This document shows positions 8,286 through 62,040 of a stretch of DNA of 64,000 nt, in pieces. The notes below the pieces were generated by a model that saw nothing but the letters and a program-made list of their open reading frames with translations, had not been told where the DNA came from and did not search any database. The position numbers were made by a program, and so were the translations under genes. The stretch is from the IMG/VR virus record IMGVR_UViG_3300047322_001237, positions 62,001-126,000 of that record, one strand, 5' to 3'. Every line of letters starts with the position of its first letter. Positions within the stretch are counted from its first letter, which is position 1.

Positions 8286-8408
8286 TTAGGCGAAGCGCAG
8301 GCCTTTCCGGTAGGCGCGGCCGCGTCTTGCTTGCCGGCGTACCCATTGGGTGTTAGCGCTGCGCATTTCGGGCGTCTTGGTACGCCGCTTGATGAATCGA
8401 ATCTTCAC
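8286..8408 (-). CDS. small very basic protein (40 aa)
   Basis: GTG at 8408 directly after the upstream TGA (TGAcGTG); MKIRFIKRRTKTPEMRSANTQWVRRQARRGRAYRKGLRFA. Confidence 0.45.
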   Translation of the reverse strand: MKIRFIKRRTKTPEMRSANTQWVRRQARRGRAYRKGLRFA

Positions 8409-8409
8409 G

Positions 8410-8682
8410 TCAGACAGCCTTCCACGGCTGGGGCTCGATCTCGACGCCGAGATGCTTGGCGTAGCCGTTGCCGATGAAGTCTGCGTCCTTCTCTTCTGCG
8501 ACGTCTGCCACCCACATTGCTTCGGCGTTGGGCTTGCGCAGGTAGACGGCCCAGCCTTCCGTTTCGGCAGTCGGACCTTCGGGCTGGGCGAGGACGTCGT
8601 AGGTGCCGTCGACGCTCTTCCACGGCAAGACCTGCACGCTGATGATGTTGTCGGGATTGTTGGTTGCTTGTGCTGTGGACAT
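8410..8682 (-). CDS. hypothetical protein
   Basis: 90 aa ORF with AAGGA RBS. Confidence 0.7.
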   Translation of the reverse strand: MSTAQATNNPDNIISVQVLPWKSVDGTYDVLAQPEGPTAETEGWAVYLRKPNAEAMWVADVAEEKDADFIGNGYAKHLGVEIEPQPWKAV

Positions 8683-8728
8683 CTTGTTTTCCTTGTTAGA
8701 AGCGAGAGCGCGGCTCCCTCATAAGTTT

Positions 8729-9253
8729 TCACGCAGCGGAGGAGTTGATGCCAACCAGCGGCGGGATGCGGAAAAGCATGTCGCCCCCCACGAGACGCTG
8801 GAAGAGAAATACGAAACGCCGGCTGCCGTTACGATCGGGTCGACTGAAGCAACCTGTCCGTTCAATCACGTTGTAGACGCCCATGCCCAACTTGAACACC
8901 GCCTCCTTGAGTCGACTGAAGTCAGCCGCTGCTTGGCTAACGCTGTGATACTCGCTATCGTCAGCGAGGTCGACTTCTTGAGTGGGGCGCAGGTAACGCA
9001 GCCCGTGCGGAGTTCGATCGAACTGGGGGATCTTCACGCGATCGAGGCGCGGCAGCAATTTGAGATTGTGCTCGATGCCGTCGATCTGGTCGCCGTAGAC
9101 CATGATGGGAATCATGATCTCGTGCAGAAGCTGAACGACAAACTCGTCGCTGAAAACCATTCCTTGGGTGTTGTTGCGGAAATCGTTGACGAGAGATGCG
9201 GTGGGAAGAATGAGGTGATCCGGGTAATGAGGCTCCTGCGGAGAGGGGATCAT
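8729..9253 (-). CDS. hypothetical protein (conserved jumbo-phage type)
   Basis: 174 aa ORF in the minus-strand operon. Confidence 0.7.
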   Translation of the reverse strand: MIPSPQEPHYPDHLILPTASLVNDFRNNTQGMVFSDEFVVQLLHEIMIPIMVYGDQIDGIEHNLKLLPRLDRVKIPQFDRTPHGLRYLRPTQEVDLADDSEYHSVSQAAADFSRLKEAVFKLGMGVYNVIERTGCFSRPDRNGSRRFVFLFQRLVGGDMLFRIPPLVGINSSAA

Positions 9254-39694: not shown

Positions 39695-40189
39695 TTACCA
39701 TGCGAGATATGAGGGACGCCCCTTCTCGTCATCGTCGAAAGCGAATTGAAGCTTTTTCGGAGCGAGCCAGGCAACGAGATCGATCTGTTCTTGCTTGATA
39801 ATGCCGCCCGTAATCGTGGATTGTGTTTTCCACTCGGTTAGCAGTTTGTTGTGCTCATTGTCGTTCTTGACCCAGTCGTCCTGAGCCAGGATTACGATTG
39901 TGTAAAGGAAGAGTTCGAGCTTCTCAATCTCTCCGCGCGGAGGGATTCGATTTTCGGGAACGGTGAGTTCAATGACATTGCCGCGCGCGCTGTAGCGCGT
40001 CGTGCCGTGCGTCTTTTCCATCATGGAGGCGAAGGCTTGACCAATCGCCTCTTGCTTGTCTGTCGTGGCGTAAAGCCACTCATTTGATTCAGTTTCATCC
40101 CAGCGGACAATCTTACCGGTTCGCTTAAAGCCCGGCATTAACTCGCGCTGATTATAGCCGGATCCATGGTAAAGCAACTTGGTGGTCAT
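39695..40189 (-). CDS. ADP-ribosyltransferase-fold candidate (Arr/DUF952-like H-Y-E)
   Basis: LLYHGS..L.PG ... WLYATTDKQEAI ... EW pattern; probable start MTTKLL. Confidence 0.45.
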   Translation of the reverse strand: MTTKLLYHGSGYNQRELMPGFKRTGKIVRWDETESNEWLYATTDKQEAIGQAFASMMEKTHGTTRYSARGNVIELTVPENRIPPRGEIEKLELFLYTIVILAQDDWVKNDNEHNKLLTEWKTQSTITGGIIKQEQIDLVAWLAPKKLQFAFDDDEKGRPSYLAW

Positions 40190-40205
40190 GTTGTATTCGC
40201 GCAAA

Positions 40206-40246
40206 AGGGCATACAGGACAGGGGCGGGGTCCCCTGTCCCTTTTTT
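40206..40246. terminator. hairpin closing the ncRNA locus
   Basis: ggacagggg-cggggt-cccctgtcc; followed by TTTTTT on plus and TGTATGCCCTTTT on minus. Confidence 0.75.
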
Positions 40247-41119
40247 GTACGCCTGAAGACAGTGGAGTCAGATCACTTGGGTTTTGGTATGTCCGTTACG
40301 CACGCGCCCGGCGTCGACTGAGGTCAGAAAACCAGCGATACTGCGATCCGTCTTGCCTTCCAGTTGCTTCCTCGTGAGAAGAAACACTAAGCGGGCAAGA
40401 CCGGAGACTGAAGCTAAAGAACAATAACGGCAGTGCGCCAGAGTTCTTGATGCGGCGATTGTTGCTAATACAGCAATGGATTAGTGCGCTTCCCATAGAA
40501 GACTGGCGTGAAGCAGATCCGTCTATTTCGCGGGGAGACAACCGCTCTAATAGAGTTACCCTGGTTCCAGCGTCTCGTAGACGCTGACTCTTACGAAGGT
40601 GTGCAACCCATCGCACAGAACGCCAAGACTTCTACAGGCTGCGCACTGAGAGCATGGCTCGATCAGCTGCATGGGCGCACCGCACGGCGCCACACGCACA
40701 AGGCACAACTTCCCGGGCTACACCCAGGCTTACCGATACAGGAGTGAAGTGGGCTCCTGACAGTCCGCTTTCGCAAGCGTTTCCGTAACCGGTGTTTGAT
40801 TCGGTGAACTGTGATCCTGAGCAACTAAAACAGCCAGTGAACAAATGGGATTCCCGTCCCTATAGCGCATCATTTCGCTGTCTCACGACAGTGCACGTAG
40901 CGTCTCACGACGAGTACGGCTGAATGCGCAGATCACTAACAACTACCCGGTGCTTTAGCGGGGCACTGGTGCTACTCAGGATTTCGCAGGCGTTTCACCT
41001 GGACATGGTTCCGGCCATCAGCGTTGCGCCTATGCCTTCTCCGTGCTGCGGACTTGCACCGCTCATCAGACAGTATCTAAGACCATCGATCTACAAGACA
41101 GAGCGATCTGTCTCGTCGC
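40215..41119 (-). ncRNA. candidate large (about 900 nt) structured non-coding RNA
   Basis: No credible ORF. TATG start at 41122-41119; 5'/3' closing helix 41102-41114 with 40265-40277; nested helices with G-U pairs; GUGA, GUGA, GCGA tetraloop hairpins; T-loop-like loops; 3' hairpin. Confidence 0.75.
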
Positions 41120-41132
41120 ATACGATAGGGGT

Positions 41133-41675
41133 TCAGGCATTTTTTACTGCGTCCGTCCTATTGCTATCAGGAAGCGCAGCGGCGACGCCGTGCTGCTTGC
41201 GCCACAGTTCGAATTCGTGTTCCTCACCGAGATGCTTGATGAACTCGCCGGCGTCGGAGAGCTCGGCAACTTGTCGCTTGATGCGCTGGTTCTGCTGAGA
41301 CAGACCAACGTTGGCGACTTCAAGCATCTCGCAGATGTCACGCCACTCCGCATCCGGCTTGACGTCCGGGAAGATCAGTCGCGGCATGAACGACAAATCT
41401 ATCGCGCACTCGCCGAACTTGACACTGATTGTCCAGCGCTCGCGTCCATGATGCGTTACATCAGGCTCGCCGACCGTCCTGATCGCGAAGGTCGTGGTGA
41501 TCTCCGACACAACCTCAGCGGGCAGGCCTGGCTTCTCGGTCCATGGGATGCAGATAAGATCGAAGTCTCGAGCAAGACTTCCGTGGATTGCCATCGCGTA
41601 ACCATGCTTGCGGGCGATTTCCGCCAACTGCGGATAAAGCGCGCAGTAGACGGGAGCGTAGTTAGCATCCTTCAT
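41133..41675 (-). CDS. nucleotidyltransferase-like protein (pol-beta-type motif)
   Basis: AIHGSLARDFDLICIPW (hGS..DxD) and a later IDLS acidic strand. Confidence 0.45.
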   Translation of the reverse strand: MKDANYAPVYCALYPQLAEIARKHGYAMAIHGSLARDFDLICIPWTEKPGLPAEVVSEITTTFAIRTVGEPDVTHHGRERWTISVKFGECAIDLSFMPRLIFPDVKPDAEWRDICEMLEVANVGLSQQNQRIKRQVAELSDAGEFIKHLGEEHEFELWRKQHGVAAALPDSNRTDAVKNA

Positions 41676-48821: not shown

Positions 48822-49289
48822 CTACTTGCTTGAGCCAGAACGCGTCCCTGCACGTCCGGGGCCGCCGGCACCCACGCGCCGCACTGTCGCGCGTTGAAGA
48901 TTGAAAGCCTGCTGCTTCAGCCAGTCAACCATCCCCGATGAACGGCGGTCCCCAAAATCGATCGCCGTCGCCACGGTCGACTCGGAGGCCACCTGCGCGG
49001 CGATCTCCTCCGGCAGCTCACCGCAGGCGACCAATACAGCTTTGCCCAACAGGACTTGTTCGGTCTCTTGCCCGCGGTACGTTAGCCGGAGGCGACACTG
49101 GCAATCCGTGTCGTCAGCAGCATCTGGTGCGAAAATTAGACTCACAGACGACTCGGCGTCGACGAGGCTTTCCCAGAGGTTGGTGACGTCGATGTCGCCA
49201 GTTCCGATGAGCGCCGCGGCGTTGTCGAAACCGTCAGACACATTGCGAACGGTGCGGTCGCCGGGATCTATCAAATAGGAAAGGAACAT
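48822..49289 (-). CDS. hypothetical protein
   Basis: 155 aa, in the foreign-looking island. Confidence 0.5.
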   Translation of the reverse strand: MFLSYLIDPGDRTVRNVSDGFDNAAALIGTGDIDVTNLWESLVDAESSVSLIFAPDAADDTDCQCRLRLTYRGQETEQVLLGKAVLVACGELPEEIAAQVASESTVATAIDFGDRRSSGMVDWLKQQAFNLQRATVRRVGAGGPGRAGTRSGSSK

Positions 49290-49295
49290 TTCTGC

Positions 49296-49829
49296 TTAGC
49301 ACGTGCCCTCATGATTAGAATCATAGGTTCCATCGATCCGCGCGAATGTGATCGAATCAAAGTTAACGTTCCCAACACCCGGGCCCGGGCCGATCGCAAA
49401 CGACCAAACTACAGGCGTCCAAATATTGTTGTAGTTGCACTTCCGCCGATCGACGACGTAGTCGTTCACTCCACCGGCTACGACGTTATGAGAGTTGTCC
49501 GATAAATAGACGAACAGGTGAACGGATTGTAGATAGTTCACCCCTTCAGAAGTACGGTCGAAATATTCAAAAGACAAAACTCCGGTTGCCTGCGGTGGAG
49601 CACCGGGTGAGACCGTTACAGTAAGATGGACTTTTTGAAATTCAGTAGCTATTATCTGACCGTCGTCTAACAGATAGAAGTAGGGGAAATCGCAGATAAA
49701 AACCCTGGTGTTGGGGGGCGGAGAATTCTGTTGACTGAGAGCGCATTCAACAGAATTGCTTGTACGAGCATACACGTCGTTGGTAACAACCATACATGCT
49801 ACGAGAACCACCAAAGCGATTTTGTTCAT
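49296..49829 (-). CDS. exported beta-rich protein (AT-richer)
   Basis: MNKIALVVLVACMVVTNDVYA signal peptide; Cys pairs. Confidence 0.6.
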   Translation of the reverse strand: MNKIALVVLVACMVVTNDVYARTSNSVECALSQQNSPPPNTRVFICDFPYFYLLDDGQIIATEFQKVHLTVTVSPGAPPQATGVLSFEYFDRTSEGVNYLQSVHLFVYLSDNSHNVVAGGVNDYVVDRRKCNYNNIWTPVVWSFAIGPGPGVGNVNFDSITFARIDGTYDSNHEGTC

Positions 49830-50027
49830 GTCAGCGCCCCGATTGGTCAGTGCAAGCCTAGGATAGCAGGAAAAGCCTTCCGGATTCCGTTAGGCTCCGG
49901 TCGCGGCCAAGACGGCCTGCGACGTGTTCATCGTGTTCTCATTTTTTTTCGGCGTCAAACCGGTCTATCGTTCGTCAGCGCACAGAACGGAATATTTCCC
50001 GGGCGATGCCCGGGAACTTTATGCTGC

Positions 50028-61665: not shown

Positions 61666-62040
61666 TTACGCCGGTACTGCGGCGAGGAACGGATTCTTGA
61701 CGATGAGCGCACCCTTTCGGTTCGCACTCCAGGTACCGATACGACCGTTTGAAAACTTCCGAGCGGATTCGACATGCACTTCGGCACGCTCAACGCGCTG
61801 TGCTTCCGTGGCACCGAACTTGAAGAGCATCGGGCGCAAGCGATTGAAGAACCCGTCTCTGCCACCCTGAGCCGTCACAATGCCGTGCGCCGTCGTGAGC
61901 GCGGCGCCTTCCGTGGTAAAACGGTCTGCCTGCTCTGCATCAGTCGACAACGCCCGGGTGGGACTCATCGCGTTGATGAAGAACAGATCCGCTGCACCCG
62001 CTCGAGCGATGCGTATGCGATAGACGAAGGCCTCATTCAT
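61666..62040 (-). CDS. hypothetical protein
   Basis: probable start MNEAF. Confidence 0.5.
   Translation of the reverse strand: MNEAFVYRIRIARAGAADLFFINAMSPTRALSTDAEQADRFTTEGAALTTAHGIVTAQGGRDGFFNRLRPMLFKFGATEAQRVERAEVHVESARKFSNGRIGTWSANRKGALIVKNPFLAAVPA

Follow-up and report, generated by a model that had tools for sequence, protein, structure and literature searches.

What is encoded by a gene-free gap of 0.9 kb in an otherwise densely coding region of a phiKZ-related jumbo phage? The gap lies in a 64,000-nt stretch of DNA (hereafter the window; positions 62,001 to 126,000 of IMG/VR record IMGVR_UViG_3300047322_001237), where only short ORFs lie between the genes ending at 41133 and starting at 40189. 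A first-pass annotation, made from the sequence alone, had proposed that the gap encodes a large, highly structured non-coding RNA read from the minus strand. We find that this observation holds: window 41119-40215 (minus strand) encodes a real, conserved, highly folded non-coding RNA of uncultured jumbo phages, and its front half carries the sequence hallmarks of an oversized hammerhead ribozyme that, if it cleaves as predicted, would release a conserved RNA domain of unknown function.

We first asked whether the proposed structural features exist. All were present: the helix proposed to close the molecule (12/13 pairs), a second helix just outside it (9/9), the helix of 40982-40972 with 40824-40814 (11/11), AGUGCGC with GCGCACU (7/7), the GUGA hairpins, and the hairpins at 40779-40766 and 40759-40739. 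Folding was far beyond chance, with z = -5.46 for the minus strand and -2.84 for the plus strand, and -6.66 and -3.99 in a second run, against a mean of -0.51 (sd 1.05, minimum -2.64) for 28 control 936-nt windows of the same phage. The region is non-coding and under selection, as it is 91% identical to the homologous locus L007 (labels of this form denote related loci), against 86% and 79% for the flanking genes; mismatches by codon position were 23/22/30, against 6/10/52 and 23/16/75 in the genes; and indels were 1, 1, 1, 53 and 2 nt.

We next searched for relatives, and found about 16 homologues, nearly all in 150-325 kb phage contigs or Paraburkholderia/Caballeronia assemblies. blastn and megablast searches of GenBank phages with the RNA, its hammerhead part, a 10-kb flank and a distant homologue returned no real match. 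No Rfam 15 family matched at gathering score on the 64-kb window or on 8 related loci, nor at E<=10 on 39900-41500 or on small variants. A search of IMG/VR with the pattern CGGTANGCC..GGAAGTTGT gave 61 hits, about the number expected by chance, of which only the already identified contigs were real; the single metagenome scan found only small hammerheads, with no further large homologues; and the closest cultured relative, pPa_SNUABM_DT01, has no homologue within 12-20 kb of the syntenic gene.

The 5' edge of conservation coincides with a TATG motif (41122-41119), from which we infer transcription to start at G41119. TATGCG is invariant at this edge in 10 homologues, and TATG with G as +1 is the phiKZ late promoter consensus (PMC4666361), although TATG is frequent and L132, L170 and L171 lack it. 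The sequence ATCGTATG occurs three times in the window, always on the minus strand and always intergenic (41126, 47596 and 52783). The RNA opens with a 5'-terminal hairpin, P0 (41113-41096, AGACAGA-UCGC-UCUGUCU), also present in the MFE fold; a hairpin sits at this position in every homologue with entirely different sequence, for example GGGGU-GAAA-ACCCC and GCGAUG..CAUCGC. P0 competes with the proposed closing helix, which is unlikely because its 5' arm forms this local covarying hairpin and its 3' arm lies in a tail that distant homologues lack. One arm of the outer helix, 41140-41132, lies upstream of the predicted start. Comparative data do not support either long-range helix, although the complementarity itself is real.

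The feature missed by the first-pass annotation is that RNA positions 67-333 have the layout of a type I hammerhead. Stem I pairs ACUGU (41074-41070) with ACAGU (40812-40808) across about 260 nt; it is 100% paired in 11 large RNAs, with AU to GC and UA to CG changes at two covarying pairs, and further variants in related hammerheads bring the total to ten different stem I sequences. The core C3-A9 (CUGAUGA, 41069-41063) is invariant except at N7 (U, C or A), exactly the hammerhead pattern, and G12 A13 A14 (40985-40983) is invariant in all homologues. Stem III (40982-40971 with 40825-40814), which corresponds to domain 1 of the first-pass annotation, has an invariant A15.1-U16.1 pair at its base (AU in 18/18 sequences), a 15.2-16.2 pair that is CG, GC, UA or UG, and a covarying distal stem; it encloses a 145-nt inserted domain that includes the invariant hairpin CUGUC-GUGA-GACAG (40891-40878). 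Position 17 (C40813) is C in 9, U in 6 and A in 3 of 18 sequences, never G, which places the predicted cleavage site between 40813 and 40812 by the hammerhead consensus. Stem I and stem III cells were 97% paired, against 65% after permutation; for the small variants the cleavage site was chosen by maximizing pairing, which inflates their counts, but on the 11 large RNAs alone, in which the site is fixed by alignment rather than by search, 98.3% were paired, against 32-46% when slid, with compensatory changes in stem I, stem III and hairpin A.

In contrast to these elements, stem II is not a canonical helix but is replaced by a multi-helix junction (41062-40986). G10.1 (41062) and C11.1 (40986), present in all large RNAs, enclose two or three hairpins: T-loop-like hairpin A (41062-41048), which covaries (GCGG/CCGC, GGGG/CCCC, GGAG/CUCC, GUGG/CCAC, GCCG/CGGC), a variable middle helix, and hairpin B (41001-40987), which is almost invariant. 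The same module occurs in independent small phage hammerheads, which have short stems III and are predicted to cut just upstream of ribosome-binding sites; in some of these position 10.1 is A, C or U, and in several it cannot pair with C11.1, so that the catalytic competence of this architecture is inferred only. No Rfam hammerhead model scored the window, L015, L094, L097 or L116 at gathering score or at E<=10, which the 35-75-nt stem II module and the stem III insert plausibly explain.

Downstream of the predicted cut lies a conserved 3' core domain of 330 nt (40812-40484), which includes domain 2 of the first-pass annotation. It contains the helix ACCGGU/AUCGGU, a GCC..GG hairpin, the invariant single-stranded GGAAGUUGU (40713-40705), the CUGAU/UCAG helix, the GCAGCCUG motif (40642-40635), and a long helix closing a four-way junction (40650-40482). 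An alignment of this domain gave 51 pairs, 30 with changes on both sides; 94.9% of cells were paired, against 34-52% when slid, and 0/500 shuffles reached the observed values, with further covarying helices seen in additional comparisons. In the most divergent members (L132, L170, L171, L017 and L096) homology of this domain rests on short motifs in the same order, not on an nhmmer hit. Pairing of GGAAGUUGU with the 5' end of the 3' product was ruled out because L017 has a different stem I (GGCGU/ACGCC) but keeps the motif, and a switch helix ACAGUUC/GGACUGU (40812-40806 with about 40755-40749) is possible in most homologues but lacks covariation and crosses a covarying helix.

The conserved unit is about 640 nt, not the 900 nt first proposed, and this phage adds a 270-nt tail. 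The lineage-specific 3' tail (40483-40241) is present only in the close relatives L007, L168, L010 and L011, and includes the hairpin called domain 3 (40401-40350), which shows compensatory changes in L168 and L011. Distant homologues lack the tail, and in L126, L127, L130 and L002 a hairpin plus U7 follows directly after the core. In the window a GC-rich terminator-like hairpin (40240-40215), invariant in the four close relatives, lies at the end of the transcription unit; however, it scores as a terminator on the plus strand, where its clean T-run lies, and on the RNA strand it is followed by UGUAUGCCCUUUUG, a weak U-tract. The TATG of the next gene follows at 40213-40210.

Other identities were examined and set aside. 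A second hammerhead at UCUAUC-GAAA-CGG...CCG-GAUGA-GAUAGA lacks U4 and the stem I/cleavage strand, and is a GA-rich internal loop; a hairpin-ribozyme-like AGAAGUC in the window is not conserved in relatives; and RNase P-like strings gave no model hit. ARAGORN found no tRNA or tmRNA in the window and Rfam gave no RNase P or tmRNA hit, with only hairpin A resembling a T-arm (GG-UUCGAGU-CC in L006, L010 and L011). A decayed copy of relatives' upstream genes left no tblastn trace, and Pfam returned no hit for the gene after the RNA in L132.

With moderate confidence, we suggest that this locus is a stand-alone gene for a structured non-coding RNA of a clade of phiKZ-related jumbo phages. In this view, the ribozyme would cut its own chain between C40813 and A40812, giving a 307-nt 5' piece ending in a 2',3'-cyclic phosphate, and a 3' piece starting with a 5'-OH and the 3' strand of stem I, which folds into the 330-nt multi-helix domain. 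We read the cut as a maturation step that frees and defines this domain as a stable late RNA acting in trans, and the stem I of only 5 bp would let the two pieces part. Our analysis establishes the conservation, the absence of coding signal, the covarying helices and the hammerhead signature, whereas the start site, late timing, cleavage itself and every step after it are inferred in the absence of transcript, cleavage or expression data. The interpretation in the first-pass annotation is thus partly supported: the RNA is large, structured, read from the minus strand with a TATG late-type motif at its predicted start, and absent from Rfam, and domains 1, 2 and 3 and both T-loop-like hairpins are supported by covariation or conservation; but the suggested relation to GOLLD, ROOL or OLE is not supported, with no Rfam hit even at E<=10, the RNA is probably cut in two rather than being one closed molecule, and the description of the phage as nucleus-forming is an inference from gene relatedness.

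The alternative that survives best, although we consider it unlikely, is that the RNA is a cis-acting leader, in which the hammerhead trims a long late transcript and the 3' domain is a protective or regulatory 5' UTR for downstream genes, with readthrough of the terminator. Small hammerheads with the same stem II module sit immediately upstream of Shine-Dalgarno sequences, the stem I 3' strand in L014 being GGAGG; phage hammerheads flanking genes have been proposed to process polycistronic RNAs (PMC3088659); the RNA always lies upstream of the same gene neighborhood; and in L168 an I-TevI-like homing-endonuclease ORF lies within the unit, downstream of the core, so that the 3' product can also serve as an mRNA leader. 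Against this, a strong hairpin plus U7 terminator follows the core in distant relatives, the next gene in the window has its own TATG motif after the hairpin, the genes downstream differ between lineages, and a 330-nt domain with 30 covarying pairs and invariant single-stranded motifs is far more than a protective leader needs.

Less likely still is that the hammerhead-like core is a relic or mimic that no longer cleaves, and that the RNA functions as one uncut 0.6-0.9 kb molecule. The lack of an Rfam hammerhead hit, the non-canonical stem II, and the very large stem II and stem III inserts are consistent with this, but all catalytic-core positions, the A15.1-U16.1 pair and the non-G rule at position 17 are kept across lineages whose flanking protein is only about 50% identical while stems I and III covary, a pattern expected only if catalysis is selected. 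A remnant or variant of a mobile self-splicing group I or II intron, possibly with its endonuclease lost, is very unlikely: a GIY-YIG/NUMOD3/I-TevI-type endonuclease gene is inserted in the homologous RNA of L168 and jumbo phages carry introns (PMC11620839), but no group I or II Rfam model matched at E<=10, both flanking genes are complete and align end to end with uninterrupted homologues, so there are no exons to join, the position is syntenic rather than scattered, and the endonuclease sits at the variable core/tail junction in a single relative. A decaying protein-coding gene is refuted for practical purposes, since although stop-free stretches of 60-170 codons exist in some frame in each homologue, substitutions show no codon periodicity, indels are not multiples of three, identity exceeds that of the neighboring genes, compensatory changes are abundant, and relatives' neighboring genes leave no tblastn trace.

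The closest known system is the type I hammerhead ribozyme (Rfam Hammerhead_1 and related models), including the phage and prophage intergenic hammerheads of Perreault et al. 2011 (PMC3088659), with which this RNA shares the 13 conserved core nucleotides, the strand order of stem I, CUGANGA, stem II, GAAA, stem III, UH and stem I, and an intergenic phage location. It differs in that stem II is a three- or four-branch junction with two T-loop-like hairpins (loops UGCAAGU or UUCGAGU, and UGAAAC), stem III carries a conserved insert of 110-190 nt, the ribozyme spans about 270 nt instead of 50-80, and it is fused to a conserved 330-nt domain in what we infer to be its own late gene. With the large ornate RNAs GOLLD, ROOL and OLE it shares size class (0.6-0.9 kb), many covarying helices, absence of coding capacity, phage association (GOLLD and ROOL) and unknown biochemical function, but these, like HEARO, raiA and other large Rfam RNAs, gave no match to Rfam 15 models at gathering score in the window or at E<=10 in 39900-41500; it contains a predicted self-cleaving module, which GOLLD, ROOL and OLE lack, it is found in proteobacterial (Burkholderiaceae-linked) jumbo phages, and nothing here bears on multimeric cage formation. 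A third comparison is with ribozyme-defined RNA ends in phage, such as tRNA-adjacent minimal HDV-like “theta” ribozymes, and ribozyme insulators, in which, as predicted here, a self-cleaving module is placed so that its cut defines the 5' end of the functional downstream RNA; in L171 the RNA starts 10 nt after a tRNA gene. Here, however, the ribozyme class is different, and the product that would be released is a large domain rather than a tRNA or an mRNA.

Hammerheads themselves are known; the one predicted here has a replaced stem II and is embedded in an undescribed large phage RNA. Neither a jumbo-phage review nor our literature searches turned up a conserved large non-coding RNA or a hammerhead in phiKZ-related jumbo phages. 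A possible but tentative further reading is that the hammerhead is the processing module of a previously undescribed class of large phage non-coding RNA, whose 3' domain, with its four-way junction, invariant GGAAGUUGU and GCAGCC...GGGA(A/U)GC motifs, and GUCUCC loop, is a trans-acting late RNA of nucleus-forming jumbo phages, for example a protein-binding scaffold or a decoy against a host factor; the two T-loop hairpins would then define a new hammerhead architecture in which a tRNA-elbow-like module replaces stem II.

If the hammerhead cleaves, it would be among the largest natural hammerheads, and would show that stem II can be swapped for a T-loop junction, a variant that current covariance models miss; similar ribozymes may therefore be under-counted in phage genomes. 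At 0.3 + 0.33 kb with dense covariation, the RNA is a tractable target for cleavage assays, structure probing and cryo-EM, and two bacterial assemblies that carry related phage contigs, Paraburkholderia sp. BCC1886 and Caballeronia arationis LMG 29324, suggest where a culturable host-phage pair might be found. The RNA is more conserved than its neighboring genes across lineages whose proteins have diverged to about 50% identity, which points to an important late function.

The region lies on the 279-kb IMG/VR contig 3300047322_001237. The gene downstream of the gap (39698-40189, minus strand) belongs to phrog_13483, and among cultured phages its only homologues are in 65 phiKZ-type records, 63 from Pseudomonas and 2 from Erwinia, including 201phi2-1, PhiPA3, Noxifer and PA7. 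Neighboring loci of relatives also carry phiKZ_IP domains, and description of the source as a phiKZ-related jumbo phage is therefore well founded; that the phage is nucleus-forming, as the first-pass annotation implied, is an inference. Only the first 100 residues of the upstream gene (41136-41675, minus strand) match phrog_35913, a module also found in unrelated Vibrio, Klebsiella, Burkholderia and PaBG phages at 55-64% identity, while the C-terminal 80 residues have no match.

We first verified the observation that this gap, filled only by short ORFs, encodes a highly structured RNA read on the minus strand. It held: every helix listed by the first-pass annotation is complementary at the stated coordinates, and the folding signal is real and strand-biased. 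An initial estimate gave folding z-scores of -5.46 for the minus strand and -2.84 for the plus strand, and a second run gave -6.66 and -3.99, in contrast to 28 control windows of 936 nt from the same phage, which had a mean of -0.51, a standard deviation of 1.05 and a minimum of -2.64. One control, window 49000-49935, folded better than its shuffles on both strands (z about -2.6 and -2.3), and tied with window 6000 on the plus strand (-2.64) as the most negative of the controls.

We next searched for homologs. blastn against GenBank phages found nothing, so we searched with the flanking protein and retrieved contigs for its relatives (given L numbers here). nhmmer then found the RNA in L007 (86% identity), L010 and L011 (75-80%), L006 (a 286-kb contig in the Paraburkholderia sp. 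BCC1886 assembly), L002 (324 kb), L126 (285 kb), L127, L130, L131 and, more distantly, L132 (202 kb). Pattern scans added L168 (a Caballeronia arationis LMG 29324 contig), L170 (245 kb), L171 (159 kb), L017 (223 kb) and L096; the distribution described here covers only what these scans reached. Relatives L003, L004 and L133, and the closest cultured phage, pPa_SNUABM_DT01, lack the RNA near the syntenic gene. Gene content around the RNA varies. In the distant relatives, three tandem paralogous 2OG-Fe(II)-oxygenase-like genes plus a DUF6817 gene lie between the RNA and the phrog_13483 gene (L126:7598-9995, L127:3594-5971 and L130:5537-7922), all four of which the window lacks there, while L006 encodes PemK-like and RelE-like toxin domains and an RNA 2'-phosphotransferase (PTS_2-RNA/Tpt1) within a few kb of the RNA gene (L006:1-1195 and 8291-8942).

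Comparison of the window with L007 indicated that the RNA is non-coding and under selection. The RNA is 91.2% identical, with mismatches by codon position of 23/22/30 and indels of 1, 1, 1, 53 and 2 nt; the downstream gene, in contrast, is 86% identical with mismatches of 6/10/52 and indels of 3 and 3 nt, and the upstream gene is 79% identical with mismatches of 23/16/75 and a single indel of 3 nt. No frame is open throughout in any homolog.

An initial alignment of homologs revealed the invariant blocks GA-ACUGUCUGA-GAG, CAGGUG-AA-GCCUGCGAAA and U-AC-GU. Scanning with the second block found short elements of about 90-120 nt in unrelated phage and metagenome contigs (L014/L092, L015, L094, L097, L110, L116, L118 and L120) that read as textbook type I hammerheads, share a stem II module of two T-loop-like hairpins, and sit just upstream of ribosome-binding sites. 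L015 has stem I UCGCA/UGCGA, followed by CUGAUGA, the module, GAAA, stem III ACCC/GGGU and GUC; L014 has stem I CCUCC/GGAGG, whose GGAGG 3' strand doubles as a Shine-Dalgarno sequence; and L094, L097 and L116 follow the same plan.

The same layout fits the window. On the minus strand, stem I is formed by 41074-41070 with 40812-40808, C3-A9 by 41069-41063, G12-A14 by 40985-40983, and stem III by 40982-40971 with 40825-40814, the 11-bp helix that the first-pass annotation called domain 1; H17 is C40813. Across 18 sequences only N7 varies in the core, H17 is C, U or A and never G, and stem I and stem III cells are 97% paired, compared with 65% after permutation, although for the small variants the site was picked by best pairing, which inflates their part of that count. 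In an alignment of the 11 large RNAs alone, where the site is fixed by alignment, 98.3% of cells pair, against 32-46% when partners are slid, and compensatory changes occur in stem I (AU->GC, UA->CG), in the 15.2-16.2 pair (CG, GC, UA, UG) and in hairpin A of the stem II module. L017 adds stem I GGCGU/ACGCC and stem III ACACACAUG/CGUGUGUGU.

This predicted hammerhead has unusual features. Between A9 and G12 there is a junction, not a helix, holding hairpin A (loop UGCAAGU, or the tRNA-like UUCGAGU), a variable helix, and the nearly invariant hairpin B. Stem III holds a 110-190-nt insert with an invariant CUGUC-GNGA-GACAG hairpin. No Rfam hammerhead model detects any of these elements, even the short ones. 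We therefore call it a hammerhead variant, an assignment in which we have high confidence; our confidence that it actually cleaves is lower.

Downstream of the predicted cleavage site the RNA is conserved from 40812 to 40484. For 40650-40482, RNAalifold predicts 51 pairs in seven helices, comprising a long closing helix and then a four-way junction. Thirty of those pairs show changes on both sides, 94.9% of cells are paired against 34-52% when slid, and 0/500 shuffles reach the observed paired fraction or covariation score, confirming what the first-pass annotation had proposed as domain 2. Upstream of it, the ACCGGU/AUCGGU helix, the GCC..GG hairpin and the CUGAU/UCAG helix also covary, while GGAAGUUGU (40713-40705) and the GUCUCC loop are invariant and unpaired. 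In the most divergent members nhmmer does not find the domain, which is recognizable only by these motifs in the same order and by the closing helix seen by eye. Two such lineages, the 223-kb contig L017 (3300-3830, minus strand) and the 36-kb contig L096 (1090-1960), carry predicted hammerheads with 139-189-nt stem III inserts followed by AAGUUGU and GCAGCC motifs in the same order, and by inspection alone look like divergent members of the same large-RNA family.

The 5' edge of the RNA is marked by a TATGCG that is invariant in 10 homologs; in phiKZ, TATG with G as +1 is the late promoter (PMC4666361). ATCGTATG occurs three times in the window, always on the minus strand and always intergenic, and a covarying 5' hairpin (41113-41096) follows the predicted start. 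In several relatives a tRNA-Ser(GCU)/tRNA-Asn(GUU) pair lies near the RNA gene (L171:3545-3810, L170:6113-6379, L132:7076-7257 and L127:6507-6692), and in L171 the RNA begins 10 nt after tRNA-Asn with no TATG motif, suggesting co-transcription with tRNAs there.

At the 3' end, a hairpin plus U7 follows directly after the core in L126, L127, L130 and L002, and the ancestral gene is therefore about 550-640 nt. The window's tail (40483-40241) is shared only with L007, L168, L010 and L011, and includes the hairpin that the first-pass annotation named domain 3, which shows compensatory changes in L168 and L011. The junction between core and tail is variable: the window has 90 nt there and L011 about 5 nt, while in L168 a gene for a 251-aa homing endonuclease with GIY-YIG, NUMOD3 and I-TevI-type DNA-binding domains (L168:2991-3746) is inserted exactly at this point. 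The tail ends at an invariant GC hairpin (40240-40215) whose clean T-run is on the plus strand (hairpin 40216-40239), although all neighboring genes are on the minus strand, and the next gene's own TATG follows at 40213-40210. The first-pass annotation had also proposed two long-range helices, one closing the whole molecule and an outer one just outside it, but the closing helix uses the 5' hairpin arm and a tail segment, the outer helix uses bases upstream of the predicted start, and neither survives comparison. Its interpretation is supported in part, for the structured domains but not for these helices.

Of the alternatives to a self-cleaving, stand-alone RNA, the one that survives best, though we consider it unlikely, is that the RNA is a processed leader for downstream genes: the small variants next to ribosome-binding sites and the L168 insertion support it, while the predicted terminators and separate promoters argue against it. 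Less likely still is a relic that does not cleave. An intron remnant is very improbable, and a dead gene can be all but dismissed.

We suggest, as somewhat more likely than not, that this is a late, stand-alone RNA that cuts itself at 40813/40812. The conservation, absence of an open frame, covarying helices and hammerhead signature are shown by the comparative analysis, whereas expression, cleavage and any function of the products are inferred from sequence alone. In this view, cleavage would release a 3' domain with a 5'-OH as the mature product, and the 307-nt ribozyme piece may have a role of its own.
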